DNA of 64,000 nucleotides from Thalia democratica. Lineage: Eukaryota. How positions within the stretch are numbered: position 1 is the first letter of the stretch; every line of letters begins with the position of its first letter. Shown piece by piece: positions 3,996 through 51,800 of the stretch. Location of the stretch: assembly GCA_965202585.1 (NCBI GenBank), contig OZ241826.1:28148001-28212000 (forward strand), in the 5' to 3' direction. Position numbers and translations under genes: made by a program. The notes beneath the pieces are model-generated. The model saw nothing but the letters and a program-made list of their open reading frames with translations, ran no database searches and was not told where the DNA came from.

Positions 3996-4311
3996 TTAAA
4001 TATTTGTTCATTTAAAATCTACTGAGAGCTACAATCAGTCAAGTAAGCCGGTTGGTGTAATGATAATTCTGTAAAAAATATCGAAAATTGTTTGTTACGA
4101 AGTAAAATAATTTTTTTTATTTTTTTTTTCAACCAATTTGTGATTTTAATGAAATATCATGTTAGTTAGGATTCTAAATGATTATACGTTATAAACAATT
4201 TTTTTCAAACAGTACTTAGGACTTTTTGAAAAATAAAAACAATTGTCACTTTTGGGTGTTTATAAAGACAATTTTTTTGTTTGAAATAAAGAAAGATAAT
4301 TTATTCAAATT

Positions 4312-6037
4312 CTATTGAACGCTAAAAACAACTAAATAAGCTGGAATCATGCCGATCAGCTGTTGCATGATTTCCATTCCGGTTTTAAAACAGCACCCTC
4401 TTGTGTCGGAGTTGGGAAAAATTTCCTCATCTGCGCGTTTGCCGTCGCTTGCCACGAAGACGAACGACTGCTTTCCGGGTTGTCCGTTCGTGACGCAGTG
4501 GCTTAATCCTTTCGAAAGTTGCCTGTTCAGGCTATTGGACGCGTAGCAAAAACAGTCGCCGACTCCGCACTCGCGATGATTCAACAAATCTTCAGGACTT
4601 TCAGGGTAGCCTCTCGTTAGTACTTTTAACACCTGGTTGGACTTGACTCCTTGCATGTAGAACGAGCCTCCGCACGTCTTTTTGCTTCCACCGACTGGGT
4701 TGATCCTGAAAAGTTGCTGGATTGCCGCTTTCGGGCTCATTTTGGTCATTGAACCGAGCACAAACTGGTGATCTTGATCTGAAGTTTGCAGCAGCTCCGC
4801 TTTGTACTTGGCGAAACCGTTGGTTTCTGAGATGCTGCTCGTTTCAAACATCAGTTGTCGCATTAAAGAGTCACTTTGCGTTCAAACTGATGCTTTGCAT
4901 GTTAAACTTCTGCCTGCTGATTGGCGTTTATTTCTTTTTTGAGCTCGGCAACAAAAGTGATCATTGAGCAGTCTTCGGAACTGACATGACTGTTTTGGAT
5001 CAACGTGTCTTTTGGCGGATCCGAAATTGGCAGGTTTTCTGAAAAGTTAGTTTTGCAGAGTTCGCAGTACAAAATGTGTTTCGCAAGCTCGCGTGAGCTT
5101 TGTTTTGTTTTGATTTCTATAAGGTATTCAAGAGTTACTAGATCGTGGTGAGCCACAAATATTCTTTTTTCGTCATTACCCACTTAAAACGTTCCCGAAA
5201 TATTTTTGTTTCCGTTGTTGTCAAACTCTCGGGCTTGAACGTCTTCCAATTGAACTTGTTTGTTGGAATGCGAACTTCGATCGAAAACTTTTAAAACGGG
5301 CTTGTAACTCAAACTGGAGTCAAGATTGAGAAACGACGAGTTTATAAACTTAGTTGAAGTTATCTTCTTACTGAATAACGGTTTGTGAGTAATAGACTGG
5401 TCATCTTTACACTCTCCACAAAGACCACTTGAACTTGCTAGCGTCTTTTTCACTTTGTTTACAAACAAGTAAGTCAAGTCTTTGGCGCTCCTATGGTCTT
5501 TTAAGTAGTTTTGACCGTAACGTTGAGCAATTTCAAAGCTGTTCGTCAAATAAATTCCGGGGCCAAGTCTACCAGAAGAAGAAGGCCTCAGTCCTTCTCT
5601 CAAGATTCCTTCTACGTTGCTACCTTTGGTGCCGTGAAGAAGCAGCAAGCTCGGACAACTGCAACGCTCGACACTTGATTTGACCCTGTAAAGCCTGAGA
5701 GCGACGTTTTTGTTCGAGTACTTTTTTAATTTGTTAGTTTTACCGCTCAAATTGAGCGATCCTTTCAACAAATTATAATCCGGATCGTCGTTTTCCAACA
5801 ACTGAAGCTCGTGCTTGGAATCCTTGGAAAGAGAACTTCTTAAATCCAAAGTGTTGCATTCAAACAACTCCAATGTAGCTTCCACCAATTCTTCTTTTTC
5901 TGTATCGAATTCTTCGACCATTTCTTTGATTCAGCTTTCGTCTTTTGCTTTTCTTCTTCGCAAAGACTGCACAAATAGTTCTGAGGACCAGAAAACTCTG
6001 AGATTGTCTGTTCTAAATATTCTTTGTTTGAGTACAT
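4312..6037 (-). pseudogene. Tandem ART/PARP-fold gene, paralog 1, pseudogene
   Basis: Four ORF fragments are collinear with the intact copy at 29987-31687. Lesions: 1-nt deletion ~5930, CAA>TAA at 5184-5186, GAA>TAA at 4902-4904, 1-nt deletion ~4870. Retains LLLHGT...GPGIYLT and the C-terminal PAYLVVFSVQ. Confidence 0.92.
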
Positions 6038-12690: not shown

Positions 12691-14414
12691 TTGAACGCTA
12701 AAAACAACTAAATAAGCTGGAATCACGCCGATCAGCTGCAGCCAGCTTCTTTTGTTGCTTTGAAAACAGCACCCTCTGGTGTCGGAGTTTGGTAAAACTT
12801 CATCGTCCGCGCTTATTCCTTTGCTTGCGACAAAGACGAACGACAACTTTCCGACTTGTCCGTTCGTGACACAGTGGCTCATTCCTTGCAAAAGTTCTAT
12901 GTCCAAGCTGGTGGACGCAAAGCAGTCACAACTGAGTCTGCAATCGCACTGCTCCAAAAAATCCTTGTCGTTCGCCGGGTACCCTCTCGTCAGAATGTTC
13001 ACCACCTCGTTCGCCTTGACTCCTTGCAGGTAAAGTAAGCCTCCGCGTATCTGTTCGCCTTCGTCGACTGGGTTGATCCTGAAAATTTTCAGGATTGCCG
13101 AGTTCGGGCTTATTTTGGTCATCGACCCGAGCACAAACTGGTGATCTGAATCTGAAGTTTGCAGCAGCTCCGCTTTGTACTTGGCGCAATCGTTGGTTTC
13201 CGATATGCTGCTCGTATCGAACAACAATTGCTGCATAAAAGAGTTCACTTTGCGTTCAAACTGATGCTTCGCAAGTTCAACTTCTGCCCGTTGATTGACG
13301 CTTATTTCTTTTTCGAGTTCGGCAACAAAAGTGTTCATGGAGTAGTTTTCGGAACAGACAGGACTGTTTTCGATCGACACGTCTTTTGGCAGATCTGAAA
13401 TTGGCAGATATTTTGAAAACTTGGTCAGGTTAAGTTTGTCGTACAAAATGTGTTTTGCAAATTCGCGTGCGCTTTGTTTTATTTCGATTTCTATCAGGTA
13501 CGCTAGAGTTACTAGGTCATGGTGAGCAACGGCTATTCTTTTTTCGTCATATCCTACTTGAAACGTGCCCGAAAGAATTTTGTTTCCGTCGCTGTCGAAC
13601 TTGCGTGCAGGAGAGTCTTTGAATTCAAGTTGTTTTTTGGAACATGAGTTACCATCGTAGACTTTTAAAACGGGCTCGTAACTAAAACTGGAGTCAAAAC
13701 ACGGATACGAAGATTTTACAAACACAGTTGAGGTTGTCTTCTTATCGAATAACGGTTCGCGAGTTTTAACAGACTGGTCATCTTTACAGTTTCCACTAAG
13801 ACAACCTGAACTTTCAAACTTCTCATTCACTTTGCTAACAAACAAGTACGTCAAATCTTTAGCATTCCCATCGTCCTTTGCGTAGCAATTGCCGTATCGG
13901 TGAGCAATATCAAAGCTGTTCGTCAAATAAATGCCTGGGCCATGTTTGCCGGACGACGAAGGCCTCAGTCCTTCTTTCAAGATTCCCTCGACGTTGTTCC
14001 CTTTGGTGCCGTGCAGAAGCAGAAAGCTCTTACATCTGCAGCGTTCCACATTCGATTTGACCCTGTAAATCCTGATAGCCACGTTTTTGTTCGAGTACTT
14101 ATTCAATTGATTTAGTTCAGTGCTCAAACCGAGAGATCCTTTCAACAGTCGTAATCCAGATCGTCGCTTTCCAACAACTGAAGTTCATAATTGAAAACTT
14201 TTGAAAGAGATTTTTTGAATGTCGAAGTGTCGCACTCAAACAATTTTACGGCGTGTTTCACTAATTCTTCTTTTCTCGCATCGAATTGTTTGACCATTTT
14301 CTCGATTTCAATTTTCGTCTTTTGTTTTTCTTCTTCGCACAGGCGACGCAAGTAGTTCTGAGGACCAGGAAACTGTGATATTGTCTGATCTAAACATTCT
14401 TCGTTTGAATACAT
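12688..14414 (-). pseudogene. Tandem ART/PARP-fold gene, paralog 2, one frameshift
   Basis: The 90-aa and 485-aa ORFs join into a full-length paralog if one T is restored at ~14148 (TAC GA-CTG TTG vs TAC GAT CTG TTG in paralog 3). No other lesion is visible. Could be a sequencing error or a polymorphic allele. Confidence 0.8.
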
Positions 14415-20435: not shown

Positions 20436-23400
20436 CAGGGGTCGGCAAACTGCGGCCCGCGGGCCAAATGCGGCCCACGAAGGGTAAATCTGCGGCCCGT
20501 GAGCACGTTAGTTTTTTGAATGGAATGCGGCCCGCGATAGAAATTTCTGCGGCCCGCGAGCTACTAAATGTGGCCCGCTGAGCAAAAATAGATTTTGGTG
20601 AATATTTTTTCGGGAATTTGTTTTAGATTGATTAATATCGTTTTAAGTCCCTGAATAACATTTTAAAACAACTAAAAGACTATATTGCTTTGACTTGAAA
20701 TTGTTAAAAAGACAGATTAGCATTTGAAAAGTGATTTTCTATCAGTTTTACAATAACTTTCTTATTGCATCTGTTTTATTAGCTAAAAAGAAGTGCTTGG
20801 ATACAGTAGGTTGTATATATTACATTTATTTAGTTATTTATATAACAAACTAAACGTAAATGCTTTCCATGTAATGCACAGTAATTATCTAAAATTTCAT
20901 TCTGTATAGTTTAGGTTTTTTTTTCAACATGTTATTAGTACCTAAATTCTTTTATAAATGTTTTTTCACAGTAATTTATATCTAAGTGTGCACAAAAACA
21001 TTTATAATAGCATAATAGTAAATAGGTTTAATTTATTTTCCATTTAAAACATATTAAATTTTAGAAGGATTATGTGCAATTTAAATTAATTACTATACAC
21101 ACCAATGTACACAGATGCACAGATGTTTAGAACCATTTTTTAAACCATTTTTTTTAAATACTTAAGTTAGATTAAGTAAAGTTTTAACATATATATAAAT
21201 TTTTTTTCTGCTTGAAAATCTTAGTATTTACAAACAGTTTTAAAACAGTATATATGCAGAAATAAAAATTTACTTGTTATGTAAATTGATAGGTATACAG
21301 TTTTATTCTCAAACAAAAGTTTTTGGTAGATCGAATTTATTTCTTTGCTTTCCACTCTAATATACATATATGCCATTTTTTGTAACTACGTATTTAAGGT
21401 ATATTATATTTAGTGATGGAAAATTTAATAAATTTAAAAGTTGTTAATCAAAATAGTTCAAATTCAAGCAATTAAGCAACTTAATTTTGCCACAATATTG
21501 GACTAAGTCAGTCATTGAATACTTTTCGAATTTCAGGCTAATTTAGACATTTTTTTAGTATTTAGCTTGAATTGCTTTTTTTTTCTAAAATTTAAATCTA
21601 AGTTATCAGGCTAGTTTTTTGCACTCATTCAAAACTTTTTTGCTTTGAAGTGTAACCGTCATCAATTACGTTGATGTTAGGTTGCTTTAGCTGCTCTTAA
21701 ATAAGATAACAAGAAACGGTTATTTAAAGTATTACAGATGTTCAGATGGAACGCAGGCTTTATTTGATATACTAGTACTTACCATGAAAATAATAATATA
21801 AAAACTAGTTATTAGTGCACGTGATTTTATATACAACATTAATAAACACATCGTGAAATAAGTGAAAGAAAAGAAACTAAAACCAATGACTTCTGATAAG
21901 AGCCCAGTAGGCACATATACTAACTACTAAACATGTTGTTGAAATGTACAGAAAATAGACTGGACGATCAATTCTTCTATCCACATTCTATCAACAAAAC
22001 CCTTCTCGATTGTTCATCATACGATTCGCAATCCTATCGTCAACACGTCGTTTTGTGCGTTCTCTCCCCCGGTAGTAATACAACGACTCGCGTCTCTCCC
22101 GTCACTAATCCGCCGACTCGCGTCTGCAAGCTAAGTTTTAAACTCTTTCTCTCAAATTTACTTCACGCTTCTTTTTCTCATTTTCTATTCTCAATACTAG
22201 TTGTGACGTCACTGAAAACATTGAAATTCTTTAACTTTAACTCTTCTGAAATAATCGAAACATAAAATGCAATGATTGGTTCGTTACATTTTTTTTTGCT
22301 TAATTTTTTTTTGTTCTTTTTTCTTGATTTTTTTTTTATATTTTTCTAAATCTAGTCTCTTACCTTGCCTCTCTATTTTGTCTTAATTTAAGATTTTTTT
22401 TTAAATTCTATTTTTGTCTAGTATCAGTTTCTACAAACATTTTTATACTTAAGATTGTTATATCAACATTACCTTTTAATGTATCAATAATCATTTACGT
22501 CTATCATTCAGTACCTGTACCCACAAACTCCTTCCGAAACCATTGGTAGAATAAAAAAAAAGAAAAAGATAAAAAAACAAGTAAATAGAAAAAAAGGTGT
22601 ACATAAGTTAATTATTTAACAAGAATATGGTATTTTTAATTACATGTGTATATACTTTTCTTAATTAAAAATAATTATTTAAGTCAGTAATTCATAGTTT
22701 AAAAAAATTATAATTTTGGAATTTAAAAACTGTAAATTGTTGTTGGTGCTTAAAATATAAAATTTAATAGAAATGTTAATAAAAAGTTAGTGAGTAATGG
22801 ATTAAAAACACGGCAAAAAATTACAAACCATAGCAAAACATTTTCTAAAGTAAAACTAATTAATTGATTCAGTAATTCATAATTTGTAAGAATTAAGTTT
22901 GGTGTTACAAAAACAATTGACAATCATTGTTTAACATACATATTTACAATTAATTTTTTTATTTGCCTGTTTGCAGAGCAGGAGTTATGTAAGTAAAAGT
23001 GTATGTAGAATTAAAAATCTTATTTTGAGCTTATTAAATCTTAAAAAAAAACTGATGTTTATGTTACTTTGAAAATTGAATGTTATTTAAAGTTAAGTAA
23101 TTGAAAATACATAAAAAACTTATAACAAATCCTAAATATTGTTTTTTTATTTTTTTAATGCAATAAACTCAATGTAAGTTTTTTCGTGAATTCCTTGTCA
23201 ACTTATTCGTCTCTCCATCATCTTCCATGTCAACTTCTTCGTCTCTCCATCATCTTCCATGTCAACTTCTTTGTCTCCACACATCATCTTCCATGTCAAC
23301 TTCTTCGTCTCCAACCATCATCTTCCATTTCAACTTATTCGTCTCCACACATCATCTTCCTTGTCAACTTCTTTGTCTCCACACATCATCTTCCATGTCA

Positions 23401-26313
23401 ACTTATTCGTCTCCACACATCATCTTCAATTTCAACTTATTCGTCTCCACACATCATCTTCCATGTCAACTTCTTTGTCTCCACACATCATCTTCCATGT
23501 CAACTTCTTCGTCTCCACACATCATTCTCCATGTCAACTTATTCGTCTCCACCCATCATCTTCCATGTCAACTTCTTCGTCTCCACCCATCATCTTCCAT
23601 GTCAACTTATTCGTCTCCACACATCATCTTCCATGTCAACTTCTTTGTCTCCACACATCATCTTCCATATCAACTTATTCGTCTCCACCCATCATCTTCC
23701 ATTTCAACTTGTTCGTCTCCACACATCATCTTCCATGTCAACTTCTTTGTCTCCACACATCATCTTCCATTTCAACTTATTCGTCTCCACACATCATCTT
23801 CCATTTCAACTTATTCGTCTCCACACATCATCTTCCATTTCAACTTCTTTGTCTCCACACATCATCTTCCATTTCAACTTATTCGTCTCCACACATCATC
23901 TTCCATGTCATTTTCTTTGTCTCCACACATCATCTTCCATATCAACTTATTCGTCTCCACACATCATCTTCCATTTCATCTTATTCGTCTCCACACATCA
24001 TCTTCCTTGTCAACTTCTTTGTCTCCACACATCATCTTCCATTTCAACTTATTCGTCTCCACACATCATCTTCCATGTCAACTTCTTTGTCTCTACACAT
24101 CATCTTCCATTTCAACTTATTCGTCTCCACACATCATCTTCCATGTCAACTTCTTTGTCTCCACACATCATCTTCCATATCAACTTATTCGTTACCACAC
24201 ATCATCTTCCATTTCAACTTATTCGTCTCCACACATCATCTTCCATGTCAACTTCTTTGTCTCCACACATCATCTTCCACGTCAACTTTTTAAAAAAACT
24301 TATGATTTATGTTTTGTTATACTCACAGTTATGGTTATGATTATAATATATTTTATATTTTAATATTTGCAGCTGCTATACTTTGAAATATTATTTATAT
24401 TAAATTATAAGTGAATCAGTGTTGACGTAATACCTTGAATTTGACAATTTGGCTACAAACCTGGAAATTGAGATTAAAAAATATAGTTTTAATTTTTTTT
24501 TTTTAAAAGCTACAGATGCAGATATGAACAATATAATTTTTTTGTATGTGATTCAAATGATCCTTCCCTTCATTAATTTCATTATTAATTCTTTTGCCAT
24601 TTTTTGCGTTGTTTGATAACTTATGATACAACTTAATTTACAAAAAAAAAACTTTAATCAAGCTATTGCACGCAGAAAACTTTGATTGTAAATGTGCGTT
24701 AGACTTTAACTTAATTTTTTTTTGTATAAGTTTTTTAGGATCTAAATTTAATTTATAACTATTGAATTAATTGAATTGTAGAAAAACAAATTGTCTGATA
24801 AGTTTTAATTGCATCTAAAAAGTCAAAATCTGTTATTAGTTTAATGTTTCAAAGGTTGTGTAAGTTTTTATAGTTGTTTTTGTTTACCTGAAACTCCAAA
24901 AGTTTTGACTTTGTTTCAAGTGTCGTGTCATTATATGGCACCACATTTCATAGATAACTTGTATTTTTTTGTAGTATCAAGTTAAGTTGCTAAGACAAAT
25001 GTTTTAAAATGTTTTCAATTCAAACGGTACTCCTTTTTATTAATTACTTTTGCTACTTTATAAATGCCTTGAAATTTTTTTCTGATCAGTCTGTAGTTAC
25101 TGAAGATAATCATGCGCTTTGTTAAATCTGACGTAAGCATTTTTACGTTTCTTGCAATAACTCCTAACCAACGTTTTTATATTTTTATATTTCGTCTTAT
25201 ATTTCACATTTACTATTTTTAAATGCAATATTCTTATTGCGATAAAGATTTGTTATAATTCTGAAAAAAAAAACTTCTTTTTATTAATGGGTTAATACAT
25301 TTTCATTTTTTCGTTATAAATATTTAAAAAACTTAAATATACATTCAAGCTGACTTATAACATTTAGTTTTTTTTTAGTTATATTTAATTCACTGTTAAT
25401 AAACTTCGTTATTTTTTTTTTTGTAAACTTTGTTATAAACAGGGTTGCAAAAAAAATGCCTAGTTTAGAAATTTGTGTACTCAGACTAAAATAAACCTGT
25501 TTAAGACATTGTTGAAAACTCAGGTCTGTGTGAATTTTATTTTTCAAGTACTTTCAGTAAATCTATCAATACTCATAATAATTTTATTATTGTAGTGTAG
25601 TTTATTTGTTATAATTTATTCTAGGCTACGTACATATTTTCTACTTTTTAATAATGATAATATTTTAGTTAGTTATTTAAGCTTGATTAACAGCAATTTT
25701 TAACCTTTTTTAACTTTTGGTAAACTTAGACTGGTTTTATATAACTCAAACATTTTTGCTGTTAAAGTGACAACTATGTAAAAGACTAGTTAATTAGTAA
25801 TAAAGTATTCGAGCAATAACTATGTAAAAAAAATGTTTTAGGTTTCTTCAATACAAATAGGTTTTACTTTTATGTAAACTAATTACTGAATTTTTAAAAG
25901 AGTGTAAATTTTTGAAAACTTAAAATTTATTTTCAATAATTAACAATTTTTTATATGAAAGATTAGTTGATACCATAAAAATGTATAAAAGTCACTCATA
26001 AAGTAATTCAAGCTTGGGTTTTATAAAAAGTTAAGTAAATATTAAATTAAACTATTAACTGGAAAAAGTAGTACATAGTTTATTAAGAATTAAATATATT
26101 AGTCAATGTAAATGTAAATCTTTTTTTTAATAAATAGTCGATGTAAAAATAAAAGCAAATCAAAATAATAAACTTAATAAAAGTTAACTAAAAGTGTGAC
26201 TAAAACTAAAACCAGAAGATTATTTAAATGTAACTAAAAATAAAACTGCGGCCCGCGAAGTTTTTTGAAACTTGAAATTTGGCCCGCGAGCACCAACTGC
26301 CTGCCGACCCCTG
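20436..26313. mobile_element. hAT (Buster/Charlie-like) non-autonomous DNA transposon, 5.9 kb
   Basis: 12-bp TIR CAGGGGTCGGCA ... TGCCGACCCCTG. 8-bp TSD CAATAGAC (20428-20435) / CAACAGAC (26314-26321), one mismatch, nnnTAnnn pattern. Subterminal GCGGCCCGC repeats. No transposase ORF recognised. Confidence 0.88.
23190..24290 (+). repeat. 34-bp minisatellite, about 32 units, inside the hAT element
   Basis: Unit tcttccatgtcaacttcttcgtctccacacatca with point variants and no unique spacers. The unit is not a multiple of 3 and is stop-free on +, which produces three artefactual ORFs. Confidence 0.95.
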
Positions 26314-27400: not shown

Positions 27401-29986
27401 CTTTGTTTAAATAGAAATTTTTGTTTTTAGTTATTCAAAGTAAGTTTTGTTTTAAACAGTTTGTTTTTTATATACAGTAAATAGTTTTTAATTTAATTTA
27501 TACATTTTAAAGTATACCCCTTATAAATTAGATTTTAATTAAATTTTTCAATCCAGTTAAATTTATTTTTTAAAGCTGTTGATTTTTATTTCTTTCTTAG
27601 TGTATGTATCTGTTTTTTGTATAAAATATATTCATCCATGACATGTCTAGTTTTATACACAGTAGCACTAAGTATTATTTAATATAGCTTTTAGTTTCAT
27701 AAATGTTATTATCTACTTATTGTGGTTAATGGTTTGGGTCAGGGTTGCCATTTTACCAGGAAACCTAGTAAATCCTGGAATTAAGGCAAAAAAACCTGAA
27801 ATTTGAGAAATTTTTAAAAAACGCAGAATTTTGAACAATAATCACTGAGAAACTTAATATTTTAGCCATTTTAAGCTTACTGAGTAGTAAAATTTTGATT
27901 AGACCAAAAAAACTATGAAATAGATAGAAAAAATTCGTCATCATCATGATTTTTTTATATTAAAATATACATCTAATGTTTAATTTTACATTACTATTTT
28001 ATTATATTATTTTGCACAGTTTCTTACCCAAAATTAATTTTAAACTAAAAATATACCCAAAAATATGTACTTTTAGAAACTTAGAGGAAATTTAGGAAAC
28101 CTAGAAAAAAATTTGACAGGGTTGCTCAAAAGTTAAGAAATAAGGAAAATTTAGGTTTTCAAAAAAAATTAAGGAAATGTCAGGAAAATTCAAAAAAAAA
28201 CCAGTCACAATTTGTCAATTTAAGTTTATAAAGTTACTTGTTTTACAAAACCTTGCAATGGTAAAAAATTAATCAAAAATTCTTTAAAGTCAGAAAAACA
28301 TTTCAAAATTTTTCTAGAGATTACGAAATTATTAATTTTCCATTTTCTTTATCTAGTGTAACATTAAAAAAATTACATGTTATAAAAATATAAAAATTTT
28401 CTTTAATCATATGGAACAAGCAGATTTTGTAAGCTTTTTAATATTGATGTTCTATAGCAAGGATACTTCCAATGTGAAACTGTGATATATACATAAAAGT
28501 TAATCTAGCATAATTATATAATTAAAGTGTTTTTTTTCTTTAAGTAAATAGTTAAGCTATTTAAAATTAATCAGTTAGTTATGTATTTTGTGTAACAAGT
28601 TGATGTGTATATCAACCCCTTTTATGATTTTTTTAAGTTGTTTTAATTTGTAAAACAAGTTTTAAGAGATGTATATGCCATGAATTAGTTTACTTATTTG
28701 TTTTTTTGTAAAATAACTTAAGTTTTTAATATAATTAAGAGTAAATTTATATGTTACAAGTTTTAGGCTAAGTGATAAGAGAAAATATTTTATACAACAG
28801 ATAAAAAGTTTTATTTTTTATGTATTTTCTTACTGTTGCTGAAATAGATATATAAAAAATGCTAAAAAAGTTGTCTTTTTTTAGACAAGCTGTGTTTATA
28901 AGGTAATAATACAAGTAAATTGCTTATAGAGCAGTTTATAGCAAAAAAATCAATCATACACAGATGGTTCAAGTAATGTGCTGGAAGTTTGTTAATTGAA
29001 TTCAGCAAAAAAAAACTGTTGTCTTAATCTGTATTATAATACGACTAAAAGCTTCATATAGTTTAAAGTGTTATATTGTGGTTGATTTAACTTCTTCAAA
29101 AATTATATACTATTTATTCAAATATATATTGTTTATTAACTAACATATAAACCGCTCAATATTTTTGTTCCTAGGATTTGGTGCACAAAATACCTTTCGG
29201 TTATTGAATCGAACTCCACGGATACCTTTTAACGTCTTGTCCAGGACGAGACAAATATAAACTATTTTAAGTGTTTCAATCTAATTATCAAATCAAAAAG
29301 AAAGGTGAATTTTAGCAAAAAAATACTTATAACACTCAACCTAAAAATATTTAAGCTTATCATTATTTTTCATTTATAAAAAAGTTGTGACCACTTTTCT
29401 AATTATTTCCATGCTTGGTATAAATATTGTTGACTTCGTTTTATCAATCTATTTTAGGTTAATATTTAAATTGTAATATTCTAAATATTCTCTACTAATT
29501 TTTTTGAGGTTTAGGCTTGGACTGTATTTAAGTTTTTTGTTCTTTGATAAGTTTTAAAGTACAGTGTGAATAAATATATTTTAAGTAAACCCATAACTAA
29601 CTTCACTTTCTTTTTTTTCTTTTCATTATATTCATTTTTTACTAATCAAGGTTTAAAAGTTTAAGTTGAAAAAGTTTAACATTTGTTGCTAAGAAAAAAT
29701 TGTAAAAGCATGTGATGTACGACTTGATAACTGAAAGACTTTTATCACATTAACTCCTTATTAGACCAAACCTTTGTTCAATAAAAAAAATAGACAAAAA
29801 AAATATGCATGGAAAGCATTGTCTGAACATTAACTGCTTACTTGGTTAAGAAATCTAAGATAAACCATTATACTTTGATTTAATTACGTTGACTACATTT
29901 AAGTAATTTAATTATTTAATTTAATAAAAAAAATGATTAATTTATTAAATTTAGACTTTTTATACAGATTGTACAGTAAATACATC

Positions 29987-31687
29987 ATGTACTCAGACGA
30001 AGAATGTTTAGATCAGACAATCTCGCAGTTTCCTGGTCCTCAGAACTACTTGCGTCGCCTATGTGAAGAAGAAAAGCAAATAACGAAAAGTGTTATCGAT
30101 AAAATGGTGGAACGATTTGAAGCAAAAAAAGAATGTTTGGTGAAAGAAGCTGTGAAATTGTTTAAATGCGAAAATTCGGCTTTCAAAAAATCTCTTTCTA
30201 AGGATTCCAAACACGAGCTTCAACTATTGGAAAGCGACGATCCGGATTACGATCTGTTGAAAAGATCGCTAGATTTGAGCGGTGAAACGAACAAATTGAA
30301 AAAGTACTCGAACAAAAACGTCGCTCTTAGGATTTACAGGGTCAAATCAAATGTGGAACGTTGCAGATGTACAGGCTTGCTGCTTCTGCACGGCACCAAA
30401 GAAAGCAACATCGAAGGAATTTTGAGAGAAGGACTGAGACCTTCTTCGTCAGGAAAACATGGCCCCGGTATTTATTTGACGAACAGCTTTGAAATTGCTC
30501 ATTGTTATGGAAATCGCTTTGTGGAAAAAGATGGTAGCGCCAAAGACTTGACATACTTGTTTGTAAGCAAAGTGAAAAAGACGCTCGCAAGTTCAGGTTG
30601 TCTTTGTGGAGAGTGTAAAGATGACCAGTCTGTTGAAACTCACGAACAATTGCTTAATAAGAATACAACTTCAACTTTGTTTATAAAATCTTCATACCCG
30701 TGTCTTGACTCCAGTCTTATTTACGAGCCCGTTTTAAAGGTTTTCGATGGAAATTCATATTCCGAAAAACAAATTGAATTTGAAGACTCTCTAGCCTGCA
30801 AGTTCGACAGCGACGGAAACAAAATTCTCTCGGGAACGTTTCAAGTTTTAAGTGACGAAAAAAGAATATTTGTGGCTCACCATGATTTATTAACTCTCGA
30901 ATACCTGATAGAGATCGAAATAAAGCAAAGCGCACGCGAGCTTGCGAAACACATTTTGTACGACTCTTCAATCTCAGATCCACCAAAAGACGCGTTGATT
31001 GAAAACAGTCCTGTTAACTCTGAAGACTGCTCCATGACTGCTTTAGTTGAGGAGCTTGAAAAAGAATTAAGCGCCAACCTGCAGGCAGAAGTTGATCATG
31101 TGAAGCACCAGTTTGAACGAAAAGTGAAGTCTTTCATGCGGCAACTGTTGTTTGAAACGAGCACCATATTGAAAACCGACAACTGTGCCAAGTACAAAGC
31201 GGAGCTGCTGCAAACTTCAGATCCAGATCATCAGTTTGTGCTCGGTAATATGACCAAAAACAGCCGAAACGCGCTAATCTTGCATATTTTCAGGATCAAC
31301 CCAGTCGACGAAAGCAAAAAGACACGAGGAGGCTTGCTTTACCTGCGAGGAGTCAAGTCCCATGAGGTGCCGAAAGTTCTGGCGAGAGGCTACCCTGCGA
31401 ACCCTGAGGATTTGTTGGGTCAGTGCGAGTGCGGAGTCAGTTACTGTTTCTGCCACGCTTCCACCATCTTGAACTGTGAACTAGGAGATGGATTAAGCCA
31501 CTGCGTCACGAACGGAAAAGTTGAAAAGCTGTCGTTCGTCTTCGTGGCGAGCGACGGCAAAGTAGCGGACAATGAAGCTTTTTGCAACTCCGACACCAGA
31601 GGGTGCTGTTTTAAAACTGGACTGGTGTTCAAGCATCAGCTGATCGGCATGACTCCGGCTTATTTAGTTGTTTTTAGCGTTCAATAG
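29987..31687 (+). CDS. Tandem-domain ADP-ribosyltransferase (PARP catalytic fold x2; second domain degenerate), 566 aa, intact
   Basis: Domain 1: ELQLLESDDPDYDLL...IYRV...LLLLHGT..NIEGILREGL..GPGIYLT..AHCYG...IFV..DLLTLEYLIEI. Domain 2: AELLQTSDPDHQFV..IFRI..LLYLRGV..VPKVLARGY...TPAYLVVF. The ATG at 29987 matches the paralog starts (MYS[DN]). All three copies have a CAG acceptor exactly 19 nt upstream of the ATG. Confidence 0.85.
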   Translation: MYSDEECLDQTISQFPGPQNYLRRLCEEEKQITKSVIDKMVERFEAKKECLVKEAVKLFKCENSAFKKSLSKDSKHELQLLESDDPDYDLLKRSLDLSGETNKLKKYSNKNVALRIYRVKSNVERCRCTGLLLLHGTKESNIEGILREGLRPSSSGKHGPGIYLTNSFEIAHCYGNRFVEKDGSAKDLTYLFVSKVKKTLASSGCLCGECKDDQSVETHEQLLNKNTTSTLFIKSSYPCLDSSLIYEPVLKVFDGNSYSEKQIEFEDSLACKFDSDGNKILSGTFQVLSDEKRIFVAHHDLLTLEYLIEIEIKQSARELAKHILYDSSISDPPKDALIENSPVNSEDCSMTALVEELEKELSANLQAEVDHVKHQFERKVKSFMRQLLFETSTILKTDNCAKYKAELLQTSDPDHQFVLGNMTKNSRNALILHIFRINPVDESKKTRGGLLYLRGVKSHEVPKVLARGYPANPEDLLGQCECGVSYCFCHASTILNCELGDGLSHCVTNGKVEKLSFVFVASDGKVADNEAFCNSDTRGCCFKTGLVFKHQLIGMTPAYLVVFSVQ

Positions 31688-31921
31688 ACTTTAAATAAAT
31701 TGTATTCCTTTAGTTGATACAAGTGTCTGTATAAACACTCAAAAACGACAATTGGTTTAATTTTTCAAAAAGTTCTATATACTTTTTAAACTGTTTTATT
31801 TGAATAAATAGTTATTTATAATAGTTACTAACATGATATTTTCTTAAAATCACTGGTTCGTTTAAAAAAGATGAAAATTTATTTTACTTCTCAACAAATA
31901 AATTTTCGACTCTTTTTACAG

Positions 31922-33621
31922 CAGGGGTCGGCTGGCAGTTGGTGCTAGCGGGCCAAATTTCAAGTTTATAAAATCTTCGCGGGCCGCAGTTTTAGTTTTA
32001 GTGAAACTAAAATAATATTTAGTTTCTAGTTTAGTTACACTAGATAAAGTTTTACTTTTACTCACTTTATTATTTTAAATGACGTTTTTACTCTCTAAGA
32101 AGTTCAGAAATTAGTTAACTAAATAAAATTAATACCTATTTGTATTGTAGAAAAGCTAAAACATATTCCTTAACATAATTAATGCTCGAATATTTTAATA
32201 GAATATATTATTAGTAATTCATAAGTATTTACATGGTTGTCACTTTAAAAGCTAAATATTTACAAGTTATATAAGATCAGCCTAAGTTTATAAAAGTTGA
32301 AAAACTAAAAATTTGCTGTTAACCAAGCTTAACACCTAAATAAGTTATCATAATTACAAAAAAGTACACAATATTTAAGAAGGCAATAAAAAAAACACTA
32401 TTATTAAACTGCATTACAGTCATAAAAAATATTCAGAGATTTCTAAGACTTATTTAAAATGTTGTAAATCAAAGTTTAACACACACCTGAGTTTTAAAAA
32501 CAATTCTTAAAGTAGTTCAATCTAGTCTGTGTTTTTTTGATTTTTAAACTAGCTCGTGTGTTTGGCAACCCTGTCTAAATTAAAGTTTAAAAAATAAAGA
32601 AATAACGAAGTTTATTAACAGTAAGTTAAAAGTATAGCAAAACAATTTTTTAAGTCTGATTGAATAAAATATTAACTTTCTTAAACATTTTATATTAAAA
32701 TACAAAAATCATTAAGCCATTAATAAAATAAATAAAAAATAATATTGTATTTAAAATGAGTAAATAGAAATATTAAAGAAGCTATAAGAATTTAAAAACG
32801 TTAGTTGGGAGTTTTTGGAGAAACGAAAAAAAAATTGCTCAAGTCAGTTCCAACAAAGCACATGATTGTTTTCAGTAGCTACAGAATGTTCAGACAATTT
32901 GTTAAGGCAATTTGATATTTTTGAACTTTTTTATAGAATTTGTGTTGGCCGCTGTAAAATATTTTTGTTTATTTCTTCGATGAAAACAAGATTTATGTTT
33001 AGGAAATGTCACATTGTATAATTAAAAAACCACATAATTCAATGTGGACTTTAATAAATTTGTTAAGATGAGAGCACTGATACAACATTTTTTTTTATCT
33101 GGGAATGTTTATTAGAGGTGTTTTTAATAACTTTGATATTTTAGAAGAACTTTTAGGTTAAGTTCAATGCAAAGCACAGCAATAGGCAAAGAAATTAAAA
33201 AGAAAAAGGTGCAATGCAAAAATATAAAGTTTTTTTAAATACAACTTTTTGTTTCTTTTTTTAGTATAAAACTAAATTAAAGGTAAAATAATTGTCTTGA
33301 ATAACAAAGCAATTAAATAGCAACACAGTTATTGAACATCTACAAAATAAACTTAGGAATAAAAATCATTGAAAACCTAAACTGTAAAGAAATGACATTG
33401 TAGTTAATTACTGTTTATTACTTTTGTATAAAATCGAAAACATATGTATTTAGTTTATTTACTAAAAATGTATTATAAAATAACTTACTTAATTCAAGCA
33501 CTCTTAACACTCTGTTTCAAGATAATAACTTGCTGTTAAAAAAGAAAGTTATTATGATCATTTGTGTTGATCCATTCAAAAAAATAACGCACTTGCGGGC
33601 CACAGATTTAACCGACCTCTG
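31922..33621. mobile_element. Internally deleted hAT element, inverted relative to the 20436-26313 family member
   Basis: Ends CAGGGGTCGG ... CCGACCTCTG with a perfect 8-bp TSD TTTTACAG (31914-31921 / 33622-33629). The body matches the reverse complement of ~24600-26313 plus the first ~100 nt of the larger element. Confidence 0.9.
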
Positions 33622-36545: not shown

Positions 36546-37989
36546 TCCGTCTCTCCATACATCTCCTCGTTCATCTCCTCGTAGATAAAGCTCGGTCTCC
36601 TCGTACTGCTCCTCGCCGATTCGTTTTTCGAGCCTTTCGTGCGATAGTCCAAATAGAATGTACGTAACATTTAAATTTTAAAAACAAGTTTAAACATTAG
36701 AAAAAAATCAATTTAGAAACTTATATGCTATTAGTTAGCAAAAACATTACTTAAATCAATTAGTCTATTCATATTTTAACTTTAAAGTTTGTTATGTTTT
36801 AAAGTAATTGAGAAACATTTATGGCTCCAATCAATACACAGTAATTCTCTACAAGCTTTAAAATAAAAAAACATTTCTCATTTTACACGAATTAGTTGAC
36901 TAAACAAGCATTCACATGCGTATCAAAAGTTTAAACTTCTTTTCGTAAAAATATAAAGCTAGTGAACTTGTACTGATTTTAAAAACTTTAATATTCTAAC
37001 AAATTTTAAACAAAGTTGTTTTTTATTTTCAGATTTTAAATACCGGGTAAGACATTTGTAGCTCGAATGACCTCGTTAAAAATGATTTTTTATAGTACGG
37101 TTAGATTTAAAACAACAAAAAACATGCCAATAAAGTTTGTTACAAGAAATTAACAAGGTCATTGTAAAACAACCGTAAATATAATAGTTTAAATTTTGAA
37201 CATAACATTGTTGCTAAATATAAAATTAAATTAAGCTTAATAAATTTAAGACATTTCAATTTAATAACCGATTATGCACTCGAAAACAAGTTTTAATAAC
37301 CTCATACAAATATATTTACAAGGACGAACGAAAAACAACAATGTTTTTACATACAGTTTAAAAAGTTTCTTATCCGTTATAGTTCAAATTAAAACGATTG
37401 TTTGAAAACAAAACAATTAAACTTTACAGTTGCTAACTTTTCTAGACGTTTAAAACTCTTTTTGTTATAAGAAAGTTTTATTATTAGAAGCCTATAATTT
37501 CATTTAAATTTTTAGTGAACTTTTCTCTTTTGATAAAATGTTTAAAACGATTGAACGATATTTAATTAATTTGACGAAACGGCGGAACAACTTGAAAACA
37601 AGACTAACTTTTGTTTAAACTTACTCGTACAAGTTTTAAAATTCATTTTAAAAAACGCTTCAACAATGAATTGCAAAAATATCATACACCACCAATACAT
37701 TTTAGTTCTAACACATGTCGATTAGCCTTTCCCCAAACCACTTTAACATAAAATTAAACACAATAAAGCTAATTACCATTAGCAAAAAACAACCCAAATC
37801 TATCACAAACTCGAACTAATTAGTTGTTTTTCCAACTAGAAATTTTAAACTCATTTTAATAAATTTTACAGACCTGATGACTAGGTTAAATAAATGCCAT
37901 AAAGTTTATCGAATTTATACTATTATTATATCAGGTTTATTTCACTCTGTCCCAATGTCACCATCTAAACAACGTAAAAAAAATTTTTT

Positions 37990-39400
37990 ATAAATAATAC
38001 ATTTAAAGTAGCTTTATAGTATATTTTTAGTGATTTTTTTATTCTTTAACACAGTTTCTTACCTTAAACTTAACTTTAAACTAAAAATAGACCCAAAAAT
38101 GTGTACTTTACAAACTTGGACGAAATTTGGTAAAACTGCAAAAATTTTGATAGGGTTGCTACAAGGTCAGGAAATAAGGAAAAGTCAAGCAAAATTGGGG
38201 TTTTTGGAAAAAAGTTAGGAAACGTTAAGAAAATTGATAAAAAAGAAACAATAGTCAGATTTTTAGAATTACAAAATTCCTCATTTTAAAAATCCTTCAA
38301 ATGGTAAAAGAGTTAATTAAAATGCCTTTGAAATCAGAAAAAAATTCCAAAATTTTGCTAGTAATTATCAAAATTATTCAGATTTTATTGTGTTTATATG
38401 GTATAAACTAATAAAATATCCTTTATATAGTTGCAAAAAATTTCTTTAAACATATTGAACTAGCAGATTTTGTAACCTTTTTAATATTGATAATCTGTAG
38501 CAAGGACACTTCCAAAGTGAAACTGTGATATTTACACATAAGATAATTTAGCATAATATTAGAATCAAAGTGTTTTTTCTTCTAGTAAATAATTGAGCTC
38601 TTTATAAATAAGCAGTTAGTTTAGTATATTATGTAACAACTTAATGTGTATACTTTACCTCTTTATAATTTTTTTTAAGTTGTTTAAATTTTTTAATTAA
38701 GTTATAAAAGAGATATATGCCATTATTCAGATTACTTGTCTGTATTTTTTGTAGAATAACTTAAGTTTAAATACAGATAAGAGTAGATTTATTTGTTACA
38801 GATTTTATGTTAAATGATAGGAGGAAATATTTTATCAAAAAATAAATAGGTTGATTTTTTGTGTATTTTCTAACTGTTACTTAAGTATATATGTTAAAAA
38901 TGATAAAAAAATGTTTCTATTTTCAGACAAGCTGTGTTTGTAAGGTAATAATAACAATATTTTGCTGATAGGTCAGTTTATTGCAAACACATGAATCATA
39001 CACAAATGGTTCAAGTGATCTAATGGAAGTTTGATCATTGAATTCAGCAAAAAACAAAACTTTTGTTTTAACCTGTATTAAAATTAGATTAAAAACTTCA
39101 CATAGTTTCAAGTGCTTGACTATGTATTTTAGAATAGGTTAAAATTAAGAGTTAGATTTAAAAAAGTCAGGAAATTTTTCTCAGCTTGATCTGTGGCAAC
39201 CCTGTTTTGTAAAAAAAATGTGGAATCCTGTGTGGACGTAAAACAAACTATAACCATACATACAATTCCTTGTAGGTTACTGGATCATAAATCATGTTTG
39301 CTAATCGACTGTCTACTTTTGTTTAAGGAATTAATAATATTTGTCATTTAACAACAAAAAACATTCATTCAAATCTGACTTTTTTGGTTAATGTAACAGT
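37990..39400. repeat. Orphan copy of the ART upstream module with no ART ORF following
   Basis: Direct homolog of ~27980-29050 and inverted homolog of ~6400-8080. It continues into a piece of the homeobox-flank duplicon (39470-39720) rather than an ART ORF. Confidence 0.8.
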
Positions 39401-45283: not shown

Positions 45284-46154
45284 CTGTTTGATGAATTATT
45301 AACAAAAGTTTTAAATTTGCAAACTGTTATAACAAAATGTTTTGTTAGTTAGAAGTGTTAAAAACTTTTTTGAACTTAAGATTAGTTCTCTTTAAACAAA
45401 TGGTAAAAAAATATAACTTTGGTTCGACTTGACTTTAAAACTGTGTGTGGTTTATAAATTCACAAACTAGTACTTTTGTTTAGTAGTAAGTTATTTTATA
45501 AAAAGTTACCATTTAAAAAAAGCAGTTCAAAATATATAAGTTATAAAAAATAAACTTTAGGGGACTCCCCTCTTTGTTATTACCGGTAGTAAAACAGACT
45601 GATCACCTTAGCTAAGTTCCCTAATTATGTTGGGGAAGTATTGGTTTTGTCCATAATAAGTTAGTAAATTTTTGAGGGAGCAAACATATGTAAAATACAA
45701 TAAATTAATTATGAAAGGATAAATAAAAGACTCGAGCTATATTTTATAAGGAGATGAAATAAAGTAAATAAAATGGGAGAAAATTTAACCGTTTAAGTTA
45801 CAGACCAATTCCTTTGAAAAGTTGTTTTTGCAGAATTTTTGAATGCGTATTGTGGATTTTTGAGTTCATAATATGATGCAGCATAATTAAACAAAATTTG
45901 ATAACAGCTATAGTAGTTTCGTACTAGTTTTATAGTTCATATTATATAAAAAATTTAGTATGGATATAAAACTATGAAAAACATATAAATATCTGAATAA
46001 AAAGTTTAAATAAACAAGCGAATACTTATCACATTTTACTCTTAGAAAAAAAAGCTTACTTGCTTTACTTCAACGCGTATTGTTGAAAATAGTAGAACAT
46101 TTTTAATTTGTAGCTAAGAAATAACCTTAATTTCATATAATGTAAACATCTTAC

Positions 46155-46963
46155 CTTCTCCTAGCATTTGTGTACCTCGCTTGTCTTGGTAGTGGTGCCG
46201 CATAAGGATGGTGTCGTCGACTAGTAGGTCGTTGTCCACTGTTCAGCAATTGGTGTTGTTGCTGTACATGGCTCGCTACATTCGCTGATTGCCTTGGTGT
46301 GGCCGTAAAACCATGACTTGGTTCACTGTTCAGGAATCTTGTCGGTTGTTGAAGATCACTGTTCAGAAATCTTGCTGGTTGTTGTTGGGCTCCTGCATAG
46401 GCTTGTTGGCTAAACTGGCCACCTACCTGAGCAGTCGGGTGAGGGAATTGACCAGGGTTTGCCTTGCGAATCGGGCTATTAAACTGTACATGGCCACCTC
46501 TGTGAGCTGATCCATTAAAACTTCCGTAACTAGTTGTCGGAGGTTGACCTCTATAATGCGAATAGCTGCCTAACTGAGCTGGTGCGTTAAACTGCCCATA
46601 ACTTGGTGCCTGTGCTGGTTGGACGGACAGTCTATAGTTCGTCATACTCGCTTGCCCGTTCAAGTGTCCGTAGCTTGCTCTGTAGACCGGTCTAATAAGA
46701 TTACCGTAAGCTGCCAATCCTGGTTGGTTAAGACGTGCATAGTCTACCGTCTGCCCTGGCTGATTGAGCTGTCCATGGTCTGCTCTATATACCGGTCCGT
46801 TAAAATGTCCACTGCTTCCTACGTGTGCTTGTGTACTACGATTTCCATGGCTTGCTATCGGAGAAGAAGTGCTGAAAAGTCTAAAGCTTGCCATTTGAGT
46901 TGGCTTATTGACTTGATAAATTGGAATCTCGTTCAAGTTTGCTTTAACATTTCGTTTAGCTTC
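46155..46963 (-). CDS. Homeobox gene A, large low-complexity (G/Q/N/P/S/Y-rich) exon ending in RHHPY...ARR
   Basis: Acceptor tactaataaacaacgcag|GAA; donor AG|GTAAGA, whose TAA is the ORF-track stop. 809 nt (phase 0 to phase 2). Paralog of 60348-61192. Confidence 0.85.
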
Positions 46964-48777: not shown

Positions 48778-48870
48778 CAGTAGCAAGCTATGCCAACCAA
48801 AGTGCAATAAGCTTGATACTTGCGAGCAGTAGAAGGATAGCTCCTTTGCTCGTAAACCGTTAAAAACCAT
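48778..48870 (-). CDS. Candidate upstream exon of homeobox gene A (MVFNGLRAKELSFYCSQVSSLLHFGWHSLLL)
   Basis: cattttacag|ATG...CTG|gtgagt, 93 nt, phase 0, compatible with the phase-0 acceptor at 46963. The homologous segment at ~421-526 also has acceptor and donor sites but not the same frame, so it may be UTR. Confidence 0.35.
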
Positions 48871-51800
48871 CTGTAAAATGTAATTGTACAAAGTTTTTGG
48901 CGCTTTTTTTGGTTTAGTAGAGAATTCCATTTTTAATCTAATTACGGTTGTTTTGTACTCTTTTTCTTTGGTTTTAGTACAACAATAAACTATTAATTTT
49001 ATTTTAACTATAATTAACTTGTTTTTTGTTATAGATGAAATTATTGATTTTGTTATAAAATTTAAAATATTTAAAACTATCAACACATGTGACACTTTTG
49101 TAAACTATTTTAATTTAGGACATATTTGAACTCGATAGGTACAAATGTAAACTTGTTAACAAAAGCTTATTTAAAACTATATTAGACACAAACTGTTTTG
49201 AAGTTTTAAATTTTATAACTTAAGTAAGTAGAATTTTATTTAAAAAATGGAATGAACTAGTTTTAAATAAAGTTAGTAATTTTTTACAAAAACAAATAAG
49301 CTTTTGTTATTTCATACATAAAAATTTGAATTGTTTTTTAAATATTTAAAAAGCCGCATGTCAACTATTTTTTTTTCTTGTACTTCTAGTTAAAAAACTT
49401 ATGTTAATAAAAAAAAATTAAAATATTAATAATTTATTTCCAAAATTACTTAAAATCACTATATTTAAAAAGTTATTGTAAACATATATATTGAAAAACA
49501 AAAATAATTCTTAGGTAATTATTAAGTTTACACGAACATTTTTTTTTAATATATGTTACTTTTTGTGATATGGCCTCTTGTTATTTTCAAAGTAATTACA
49601 ATTGTCGGAAATCGAATTGTCTGAGTTCAAATAGTCGTGATCCAATTTTATTTAATAACTTATACATTTGTTTTTTTTTTGTGAATTCTTAACGAACTAT
49701 TTCTTATTTCTCCTTAAAAAAAATTTCACGTGTTGTAATTCTAAATACAAGAATCATAAGGGTATCAACTATTTTATTACTAATACAAAACAGTTCTTTC
49801 ACTAAGTCAATAACTATTTTTCTGGTAAAAGATGCTTTCTTTAAAAATATAATTACCTACAATTTTAAATATAAATGATACACTTTTAACAGTACAGTAA
49901 CAATGGCAGTATTATAGAAATACTTTTTAAAACTAGATGAAACTTTAATTAAGATCAATAAAACTATAGAAATTTAAAAATCATACACATTTTATTCATT
50001 TAGTCAACTTATAGAAAACTTTTGTCTATGAATATTCATAACACTAATTTAAAATACTCGAATACGTAAATAACATAAACGAAAAGTATAATAAAACTTA
50101 CATAACGTTGAGCAATACAAATTCTAATACAAATAATTTTAATCTAAACATGACAATTAACTAAATCTTTTATAAACAATCTCTATTTTAAAGATAGTAC
50201 TAGTTCTTTTAAGGCATAGTTATGAATACTTTGTTTGACAAAAACTTGTTTTTTAAGCCTACAAAAATTAAAATTTACACAAAGCCAAAATCTAATGGAG
50301 TTACACAGATTTTAGAAACATAGCTCAAAAAATAAAACAATATTTTCCGGTTGACTTTTAACAATTTAAAGAAAACATCGGCGAAAGCCTACATAGCCTA
50401 AGCCTTGACCTTCGTATACATTGAGACAAATCTCAGATACGGTTCGCAGTCTACCGAAAGCTTGTGGTCGGATGATCGAAGTAGTATGATTAAATTTTCA
50501 TTTTAATAATTTTAGCATAAATACAATCATAAGTAGTGTTACGATGTATCAAAATAATCACTATTAACAAGTCAACATGCAAAAGTATTCAAGTAGTTCT
50601 TTAAATTCACTTAATTTTGAATACTTTTTTAATATTATTAGGAATCAAAAATGTCTCATAAATTATAAATGTTTGATTTTGCAATCTAAGCTTATGATTT
50701 GATGACCTTTTACAAAATAAAACTGTGAACTGAACTAGCTATTACATAAGTTTAATACTAAGATGGTTAAACAGTTTAATGTCAAACTATTGATGTTTAA
50801 AAAAACTTAGCGTTTTACTACAACTATTCTCTTATTTTTTACTCTAAAAGTGTTACATTTACATAAACTTTAATATTTCACAATTCAAAGTTCATTATTG
50901 TTTGTAAACAATAATATAGCCTATTAAAATTTTAAGTTTTTTTCAAAGTACGGCTTTTGAAAATTATATACATGCAATACGTTTCTTATTTCAAGCCATT
51001 ATTTTCAGAAAGTCAGCGACATTTCTTTCTTTAATAAAAAAACTAATGTTCTAGATAAACTAAAGTTAAACAAAAGCAGTTCGATAACTTACAAGCTTCT
51101 GATTGCCATCCTTTATGATATTAACAAGAAAGTTTTGAAAATTAATAACCTTTTAACTTTAGTAAAAGTCTACACTACGTAAAAAATAGGAAAAGCCGAA
51201 GTATAATATTTTATAATTGTTAAAAGTTTAAAAAACTAATAAAACACCTTAAGTTGCAATTTAATCTAACAATATCATAAAATTTCGTATTTTTTAATTA
51301 CAGTTATAATACTTTCAGTAGTAAATTTAAACTAATTTTAGCTTTAAGTTGTTAATATATACAATGAAGTTAGTTTAACAGATTATCTTACATTTAAGAC
51401 TTATTAGACAAAAAAATAAGACAAAATGATTTTATAAAATTATTTGTTTTTTTTTTATACATGACATATCACATAGTAATAAGGCAGTGTGATCTTCAGA
51501 CTTTGTAAATTAACAGTCAAAAAATTAATAAAAAAGTATAAAGCTTTTTGAAATTTTAGTACCACCGGTTCACCAGCTATATCATGAAGCTTCTTAGGTT
51601 AACAATAAAAACATTAGTAGTTAATAAAATCTGTAATAAACTATCACTATATTTAATTTCAATTTATCTGCAGTTTTAAATACAAACTAGCTGAACTGTT
51701 AAAGAACGATGCGATTTTGGGACTATATATTTTTCTAACACCAATATATACTTTTATATCATTTAAACTACAGCTGTTTTAGTATTAACTGAAATTATTA

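Follow-up and report, generated by a model that had tools for sequence, protein, structure and literature searches.

Two tandem PARP-type modules, only one of which keeps the NAD+-pocket residues, in the proteins of a large gene family of Thalia democratica

PARP-family proteins are classified by the parts fused to a single catalytic ADP-ribosyltransferase (ART) domain. Human PARPs devoid of the catalytic glutamate are active mono-ADP-ribosyltransferases (mono-ARTs), and PARP10, PARP14, PARP15, and PARP16 harbor H-Y-I/L/Y triads. Two similar ART-fold domains are present in tandem in iota toxin Ia, C2I, and VIP2, one domain binding NAD+ and the other acting as a binding adaptor (PMC3202787). 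We report here on a 64,000-nucleotide stretch of Thalia democratica DNA (GenBank assembly GCA_965202585.1, contig OZ241826.1, positions 28,148,001 to 28,212,000 of the forward strand), hereafter the window, in which an intron-free and complete coding sequence (29987..31687, plus strand) specifies a PARP-like protein of 566 residues and ends with a TAG stop codon. This protein, designated the two-module protein, consists of two homologous modules, each made of a long helix followed by a PARP-type ART domain. The corresponding features, in window positions, are the following:

30041..30157, plus strand: long helix 1 (residues 19-57), preceding ART domain 1, from the full-length AlphaFold2 model and DSSP
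30212..30925, plus strand: ART domain 1 (ART1; residues 76-313), from Pfam PF00644, PDB profile matches, Foldseek, and column counts
30590..30718, plus strand: variable low-confidence insert in ART domain 1 (residues 202-244), with a predicted local distance difference test score (pLDDT) below 50
30968..31018, plus strand: disordered linker between the modules (residues 328-344), pLDDT below 50
31034..31150, plus strand: long helix 2 (residues 350-388), preceding ART domain 2, from the full-length AlphaFold2 model
31193..31681, plus strand: ART domain 2 (ART2; residues 403-565), a probable pseudo-ART, from the model, Foldseek, VIA-align, ESM Atlas, and column counts

The insert of ART domain 1 contains cysteines in the clade of the window gene and differs in length among relatives. 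An earlier examination of the letters without database searches (the sequence-only reading) had proposed that PARP catalytic landmarks occur twice, each set being preceded by a similar helix. All the motif pairs that it listed were retrieved in the protein, LLLLHGT (residues 131-137) facing LLYLRGV (450-456) and LEYLIEI (304-310) facing PAYLVVF (557-563), with GPGIYLT at residues 159-165, and the model places a single long helix before each domain. PF00644 was the sole Pfam match (residues 130-196), with a score of 24.2-24.6 bits versus a gathering threshold of 26.7 bits. Pfam detected no WGR, macro, WWE, zinc-finger, ankyrin, PARP_reg, or BRCT domain in the 566-residue protein, in agreement with the earlier failure to recognize the first five of these domains.

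To analyze the origin of the two modules, relatives were collected by a word-indexed search, which gave 12 sequences, and by an exhaustive phmmer search, which gave 220 cluster representatives, including 45 with E values below 1e-30. The alignment was built with 34 full-length relatives. Comparison of the profiles of the N-terminal and C-terminal halves of these 34 sequences by hhalign gave a probability of 99.5% and an E value of 2.7e-22 over 174 columns. A tree of the 68 half-proteins was split into N and C domains at a single branch (support of 100/85, present in 100% of the bootstrap trees). Thus, one duplication, older than the whole family, generated the two modules, as anticipated from the resemblance of the two helix-plus-ART units. 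The branches of the C domains were longer than those of the N domains throughout the tree. PF00644 was detected in the N halves of 23 of 24 relatives (best E value of 2.1e-10), whereas it matched only 4 of the 34 C halves, and weakly (best E value of 0.0071).

The fold of each half was then compared with known structures. The profile of the N half matched PARP3, PARP15, PARP1, PARP14, and PARP4 in the PDB with E values of 1.6e-8 to 1e-5. The profile of the C half retrieved the same PARPs, only marginally (E values of 0.04-0.2). A model of the C half by itself, built from its alignment, had a pLDDT of 91.4 and a predicted template modeling score (pTM) of 0.89, and the 50 top Foldseek matches of this model in the PDB were all PARP ART domains (E value of 1e-6). 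VIA-align aligned 130-177 residues of the same model with PARP14, PARP1, PARP3, PARP2, PARP10, and PARP15 (Z scores of 12.5-11.7), and the ESM Atlas neighbors of module 2 were PARP clusters, including a ZAP cluster (template modeling scores, TM, of 0.63-0.67). Each half therefore has the fold of a PARP-type ART domain, as expected from the sequence-only reading, which would have been contradicted by a C-terminal half of another fold. The full-length AlphaFold2 model (pLDDT of 80.7, pTM of 0.68) matched PARP3 and PARP1 (Foldseek E value of 5e-8). In some structural alignments, the C-terminal part of the helix preceding ART domain 2 is covered by stretches of the model matched to PARP1 756-1008 and PARP3 277-532, both of which begin upstream of the ART core, presumably with the final helix of the helical domain. 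At the level of alignment ranges, this overlap suggests that the pre-ART helix represents what is left of that final PARP1-3 helix. Prediction of a complex between modules 1 and 2, made without alignments, gave a score of 0.31 for a mark of 0.34, a value that argues neither for nor against their packing. Some AlphaFold DB entries spanned both modules with a TM of 0.20-0.22 and a root-mean-square deviation above 20 Å, among them A0A6P8ZTG9, A0A834I2D6, A0A812KCD0, and A0A7S1CMD4 (TM of 0.20-0.21). Proteins with two ART domains may therefore be present in other eukaryotes, insofar as such very low TM values can indicate.

The residues of the NAD+ pocket are conserved in module 1. Among the 34 relatives, His135 was present in 31, Gly136 in 33, Thr137 in 31, and Tyr163 in all. 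Tyr174, which aligns with the second pocket tyrosine of PARP3, was at least 90% conserved. All 37 complete copies of the gene found in the genome (see below) encode both His135 and Tyr163. Phe285 is invariant and His298 invariant or nearly so in ART domain 1. The position equivalent to E988 of PARP1 and L659 of PARP15 is occupied by Arg293, 13 residues before the conserved tyrosine of the last strand. The same register was given by a weak hidden Markov model (HMM) alignment to PARP15, and the modeled strand begins at residue 293, E988 lying at the start of the fifth core strand in PARP1. Position 293 was Lys in 16 relatives, Arg in 5, Asn in 3, Ser in 3, Leu in 2, and Glu in none, and it was Arg in 27 and Lys in 10 of the genome copies. 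Since loop lengths might move the E988 register by one or two residues, the neighboring columns were also counted; they contained Glu in at most 9 of the 34 relatives. The family thus appears, from its aligned sequences, to be devoid of the conserved catalytic glutamate of PARPs that form poly-ADP-ribose (PARP1, PARP2, and the tankyrases), and the putative triad of module 1 is H-Y-K/R. In the absence of Glu at the E988 position, module 1 would be a mono-ART at best. The glutamate of LEYLIEI, a motif that had been listed among the catalytic landmarks, is located in the last β-strand, where the motif corresponds to PEYLITF of PARP15 and LKYLLKL of PARP1; it is not the catalytic glutamate and is replaced by Ala in most relatives. 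The proposal that domain 1 is an enzyme is hence compatible with the His and Tyr of the NAD+ pocket, but domain 1 would not be a canonical H-Y-E enzyme, owing to Arg293.

Module 2 displayed a different pattern. Its His position is occupied by Arg454 in the window gene. Among the 34 relatives, the residue was His in 14, Asn in 7, Tyr in 3, Thr in 3, Arg in 2, and Lys in 2, and among the genome copies it was Arg in 26, Gln in 8, and His in 3. Gly455 was conserved in 31 of the 34 relatives. In place of the GxGxY loop, module 2 has a loop of variable length, often rich in cysteine (C480, C482, C487, and C489 in the window gene), and the second pocket tyrosine aligns to Gly500. Both tyrosines are missing family-wide. 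The second domain is therefore degenerate, as previously deduced from the replacement of its His, although this loss is not peculiar to the window gene, the His position varying within the family. Judging from its pocket residues, module 2 is a probable pseudo-ART across the whole family.

The selection regime was analyzed with pooled Nei-Gojobori counts for 10 phylogenetically independent pairs of paralogues. The ratio of nonsynonymous to synonymous substitution rates (dN/dS) was 0.44 for the whole protein (95% confidence interval, CI, of 0.38-0.50). The structured parts of ART1 were the most constrained (approximately 0.32-0.34), and the highest value was obtained for the linker (0.69); the ART1 insert gave 0.62. 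For ART2, dN/dS was 0.48 (95% CI of 0.38-0.60), and the difference between ART2 and ART1 had a CI of 0.00-0.28, indicating that module 2 is slightly less constrained. A codon model gave an omega of 0.557 for the paralogues. Since module 2 is still under purifying selection, it would be a retained pseudo-ART.

The gene belongs to a large family. A six-frame search of the whole genome gave at least 79 matches to the two-module protein (77 of 1073 first-look candidates scored), and a 231-nucleotide ART1 probe retrieved 92 DNA candidates genome-wide. Approximately 65 matches are located within a 1.2-Mb array (C1:27.2-28.4 Mb), with one match roughly every 15-20 kb and on both strands, and smaller groups occupy other parts of C1 as well as C4, C9, and C560. 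Examination of 37 loci revealed 36 complete open reading frames besides that of the window, for a total of 37, and one locus lacking the ATG. Two other copies, found in the window by tblastn, have Pfam PARP scores above the gathering threshold:

4315..6037, minus strand: paralogue A, 65-70% identical at the protein level, with two frameshifts and an in-frame stop; 28.8 bits for PARP (middle piece)
12691..14414, minus strand: paralogue B, 71-78% identical at the protein level, with one frameshift due to a 1-nucleotide deletion near 14148, outside of a homopolymer; 29.2 bits for PARP

The sequence shared by the window copies extends from approximately 30-90 nucleotides before the ATG to approximately 230-300 nucleotides after the stop codon. 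Alignment of more distant flanks showed matches only inside subgroups of paralogues. Because these subgroup flanks are shared far past the transcript, and no poly(A) tract is present, growth of the array occurred by segmental duplication. A retrocopy origin was ruled out for the same reasons and by the lack of a leader sequence. No transposase or terminal repeat was seen to travel with the gene. Segmental repeats of 76-91% identity, in both orientations, link positions 481-3997 to 48825-52231, 6985-9067 to 29080-27046, and 27951-29070 to 37984-39114 of the window, indicating that the array was assembled from duplicated blocks of several kb. Certain copies stop after module 1 (residues 1-326/327 of the query), at G000:C1:27519211-27520188 and G000:C1:28110745-28111710, both on the minus strand. 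One module-1-only copy has an open frame of 369 residues and a metagenome counterpart of 330 residues (P0003). These copies are possibly stand-alone module-1 variants.

The relatives found outside of the genome all originate from marine metagenome assemblies, one of them being a Tara Oceans scaffold. The closest (67% identity) shares with the window gene the acceptor and leader upstream of the ATG (see below) and the contrast between a GC-rich gene and AT-rich flanks, and is therefore from a related animal. Full-length two-module relatives, with identities down to 20-30%, were present in other marine samples. Matches in viral contigs were limited to 40-60 residues of the generic ART core, and a two-module relative was not found there. 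A PADLOC search gave no match to the two-module protein. A search for named relatives with the N-half profile gave nothing beyond unnamed fragments belonging to the family itself.

The open reading frame delineated by program around the gene begins further upstream (29933-31687, 584 residues). The ATG at 29987 is the conserved start, since the relatives all open with MYS or MYL at this position, and the coding sequence delimited in the sequence-only reading is therefore correct. The gene has a GC content of approximately 40%, versus approximately 24% in its flanks. The window as a whole is AT-rich (approximately 24% GC) with scattered islands of approximately 40% GC, one of which contains the two-module gene as an uninterrupted reading frame. 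Two signals flank the coding sequence:

29960..29967, plus strand: pyrimidine-rich, 3' splice-acceptor-like site (TTATACAG / TTTTTACAG), 19 nucleotides upstream of the ATG
31694..31699, plus strand: AATAAA polyadenylation signal, 6 nucleotides 3' of the stop codon, present in nearly all of 26 aligned paralogue flanks

The TTACAG acceptor-like site falls between the ATGs at 29933 and 29987, recurs in almost all of the 26 paralogues, and was also present in the metagenome locus L001. It is a candidate acceptor for trans-splicing or for splicing within the 5' untranslated region. A second conserved TTTTTACAG was observed approximately 225 nucleotides past the stop codon in nearly all paralogues (31913-32000 in the window). 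In the window copy, a repeat of very high copy number begins immediately behind it, at 31922. Contig depth reached approximately 9e5 at this repeat, versus 1e3-1e4 across the gene, and many contigs had loose ends at 31922. A JGI contig containing the relative P0004 was considered as a possible transcript owing to its mRNA-like size, but rejected because it was colinear with genomic contigs and devoid of a leader and of poly(A).

Other features of the window were as follows. A minisatellite at 23191-24288 (34-bp unit, 32 copies, 90% match, GC skew of -0.45) yields three overlapping spurious open reading frames of 344-384 residues on the plus strand. An AT-rich open reading frame of 359 residues (53382-54461, plus strand) contains the segment IYIGST...RYNEHK, which recalls the GIY-YIG nuclease motif, and had no Pfam hit; it is possibly a remnant of a transposable element. 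Finally, 46151-46936 (minus strand) and 60342-61196 (plus strand) are mirror-image low-complexity open reading frames rich in Gln, Gly, Tyr, and Pro, with approximately 65% DNA identity over 2 kb.

With moderate confidence, we favor a reading of these data in which module 1 is an NAD+-binding mono-ART, module 2 is its non-catalytic partner, and the family evolves by birth and death. The protein would be cytosolic, and its two tandem helix-plus-ART modules derive from the single internal duplication that predates the family. Module 1 would most likely bind NAD+ and transfer single ADP-ribose units, like the glutamate-less human PARPs, without forming polymers. Its acceptor might bear a phosphate, such as a nucleic-acid end, as hinted by the basic residue at position 293. 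Module 2, whose pocket is gone but whose fold remains under purifying selection, would most likely serve module 1 as a non-catalytic partner in binding or regulation. The family, which comprises approximately 80-90 intron-free copies, mostly in the 1.2-Mb array, would be lineage specific. A large clustered family with birth and death is characteristic of immunity and genetic-conflict genes, and a similar role may be envisioned here.

Several observations weigh against this reading. The E988 position was deduced from sequence register, from predicted secondary structure, and from a weak HMM match, and a search of the PDB with a short profile of the C-terminal strands of ART1, performed to fix this position, gave no match. 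To our knowledge, none of the active human PARPs has a basic residue at this position. In addition, Ala171, which is invariant among ten close relatives, occupies the position of Ser904 in PARP1. Based on these two residues, module 1 could be inactive too. Approximately half of the family is intact, the remaining copies being interrupted or truncated, and a coarse test for positive selection revealed no 15-codon window in which dN exceeded the family-wide dS. Finally, none of the RNA runs searched contained the two-module gene, and the contigs of three runs compared with it were short and DNA-like (a collapsed multi-copy family), without start, end, or splice.

In the main alternative, neither module would have catalytic activity, the protein being a scaffold or reader made of two pseudo-PARP domains, like PARP13/ZAP, TASOR, and plant SRO, and possibly retaining the binding of NAD+ or ADP-ribose but not the transfer. 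The Lys or Arg at the E988 position without a conserved Glu nearby, the replacement of the nicotinamide-contacting Ser by Ala171, the score of the window copy below the Pfam cut-off (24.2 versus 26.7 bits), and the presence of inactive PARP-like SRO clusters among the lower-ranked neighbors of the feature search all speak for this possibility. We nevertheless consider it unlikely, since the His, the Gly, and both tyrosines of module 1 were conserved in essentially all of the 34 relatives and in all 37 genome copies. Module 2 has lost these residues, a difference that would be expected if the pocket were needed in module 1 alone. Furthermore, ART1 is the most constrained part of the protein, and human PARPs similarly devoid of Glu are active. 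The opposite proposal, that module 2 is a second active enzyme wherever its His is retained, the ancestor being a double enzyme and only some copies combining an enzyme and a pseudoenzyme, is hardly credible. The His of module 2 is indeed present in 14 of the 34 relatives and in 3 of the 37 genome copies, and Gly455 is retained in 31 of the 34 relatives, but in every relative module 2 lacks a conserved equivalent of either pocket tyrosine, and its loop is variable in length and Cys-rich. The C halves are also barely reached by PF00644 (4 of 34), and their branches are consistently the longer ones.

The state of the copies raises another question, namely whether the array results from a recent and largely neutral or selfish amplification of DNA, with decaying copies devoid of function for the organism. 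Approximately half of the 79 matches are truncated or interrupted by stops or frameshifts, among them the two other copies of the window, and the copies are embedded in segmentally duplicated, repeat-rich DNA with flanks common to both orientations. This explanation is highly improbable in view of dN/dS values well below 1 in each structured region, of the 37 complete open reading frames with conserved start context and poly(A) signal, and of the absence of a transposase or terminal repeat moving with the gene. Two-module relatives at 20-30% identity elsewhere additionally indicate that the architecture has long been kept. An active module 1 flanked by a non-catalytic module 2 thus remains the reading that we favor. 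In a bolder version of it, which we regard as quite unlikely, the array of approximately 90 copies would constitute a hitherto undescribed animal ADP-ribosylation system, in which an active site containing Lys or Arg modifies phosphate-bearing acceptors, the pseudo-ART serves as a sensor or in target recognition, and the copies diversify by birth and death in the innate immunity or genetic conflicts of a marine zooplankter.

A clade with a duplicated catalytic module, one copy bearing the pocket and the other being a pseudoenzyme, would add an architecture to the PARP family. It would also provide a natural pairing of an enzyme and a pseudoenzyme inside the H-Y clade, otherwise known from the unrelated binary toxins of the R-S-E type. 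The degree of conservation of Lys or Arg at the position of the catalytic Glu suggests that the chemistry or the acceptor is a different one. The human genome contains 17 PARP genes, and the approximately 80-90 copies reported here are several times that number. The family may point to a heavy reliance on ADP-ribosylation in the lineage-specific biology, plausibly the defence, of an under-studied group of marine animals. The sequence-only reading had not recognized the architecture from the described PARP families. In agreement, full-text phrase searches, and term searches of broad surveys of eukaryotic PARPs, returned no description of tandem or double PARP catalytic domains, and the searches for relatives revealed no named protein detectably close to the two-module protein. 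The RNA 2'-phosphotransferase Tpt1/KptA was rejected as a relative because it gave only short local matches at the HGT motif (PDB E value of 0.39). Tpt1 scored 14.5 bits for a cut-off of 231 in NCBIfam, and Pfam PTS_2-RNA was detected in 1 of 24 relatives (E value of 0.038).

Both modules share the PARP-type ART fold of the PF00644 proteins, the nearest structures being PARP3, PARP1, PARP2, PARP4, PARP14, and PARP15, and module 1 displays their HG[ST] motif, GxGxY motif, and second pocket tyrosine. It also contains a D-G-x-x-[IV]-x-x-G-T segment, a feature of PARP1-3. In contrast to these PARPs, the two-module protein has two ART domains per chain, Lys or Arg at the position of E988, and Ala at that of Ser904. 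It also differs from the members of PARP clade 1 (PARP1-3) by the absence of WGR and PARP_reg domains according to Pfam, a single long helix preceding each ART. The glutamate-less mono-ARTs PARP10, PARP14, PARP15, and PARP16 resemble module 1 in the retention of His and Tyr and the absence of Glu, and PARP14 and PARP15 were among the best profile and structure matches. However, the third residue of their triad is hydrophobic or aromatic instead of Lys or Arg, and they possess additional macro, WWE, RRM, or transmembrane regions, which are missing from the two-module protein. PARP13/ZAP, PARP9, TASOR, and RCD1/SRO resemble module 2, as they combine a conserved ART fold with the loss of the His and Tyr of the NAD+ pocket. 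Unlike these known pseudo-PARPs, module 2 is fused to a pocket-bearing sister domain, both originating from an internal duplication. The clostridial and Bacillus binary toxins share with the two-module protein the combination of an active and an inactive ART domain (PMC3202787), which is putative in the latter case. However, the toxins are secreted bacterial proteins of the R-S-E clade, with the inactive domain at the N-terminus, whereas the two-module protein is eukaryotic and of the H-Y type, with the degenerate domain at the C-terminus. The sequence and fold matches of the two-module protein were all to H-Y-type PARPs, which sets it apart from enzymes with the R-S-E motifs (Arg, Ser-Thr-Ser, Glu-x-Glu). 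The likeness to binary toxins is one of design, not of descent.

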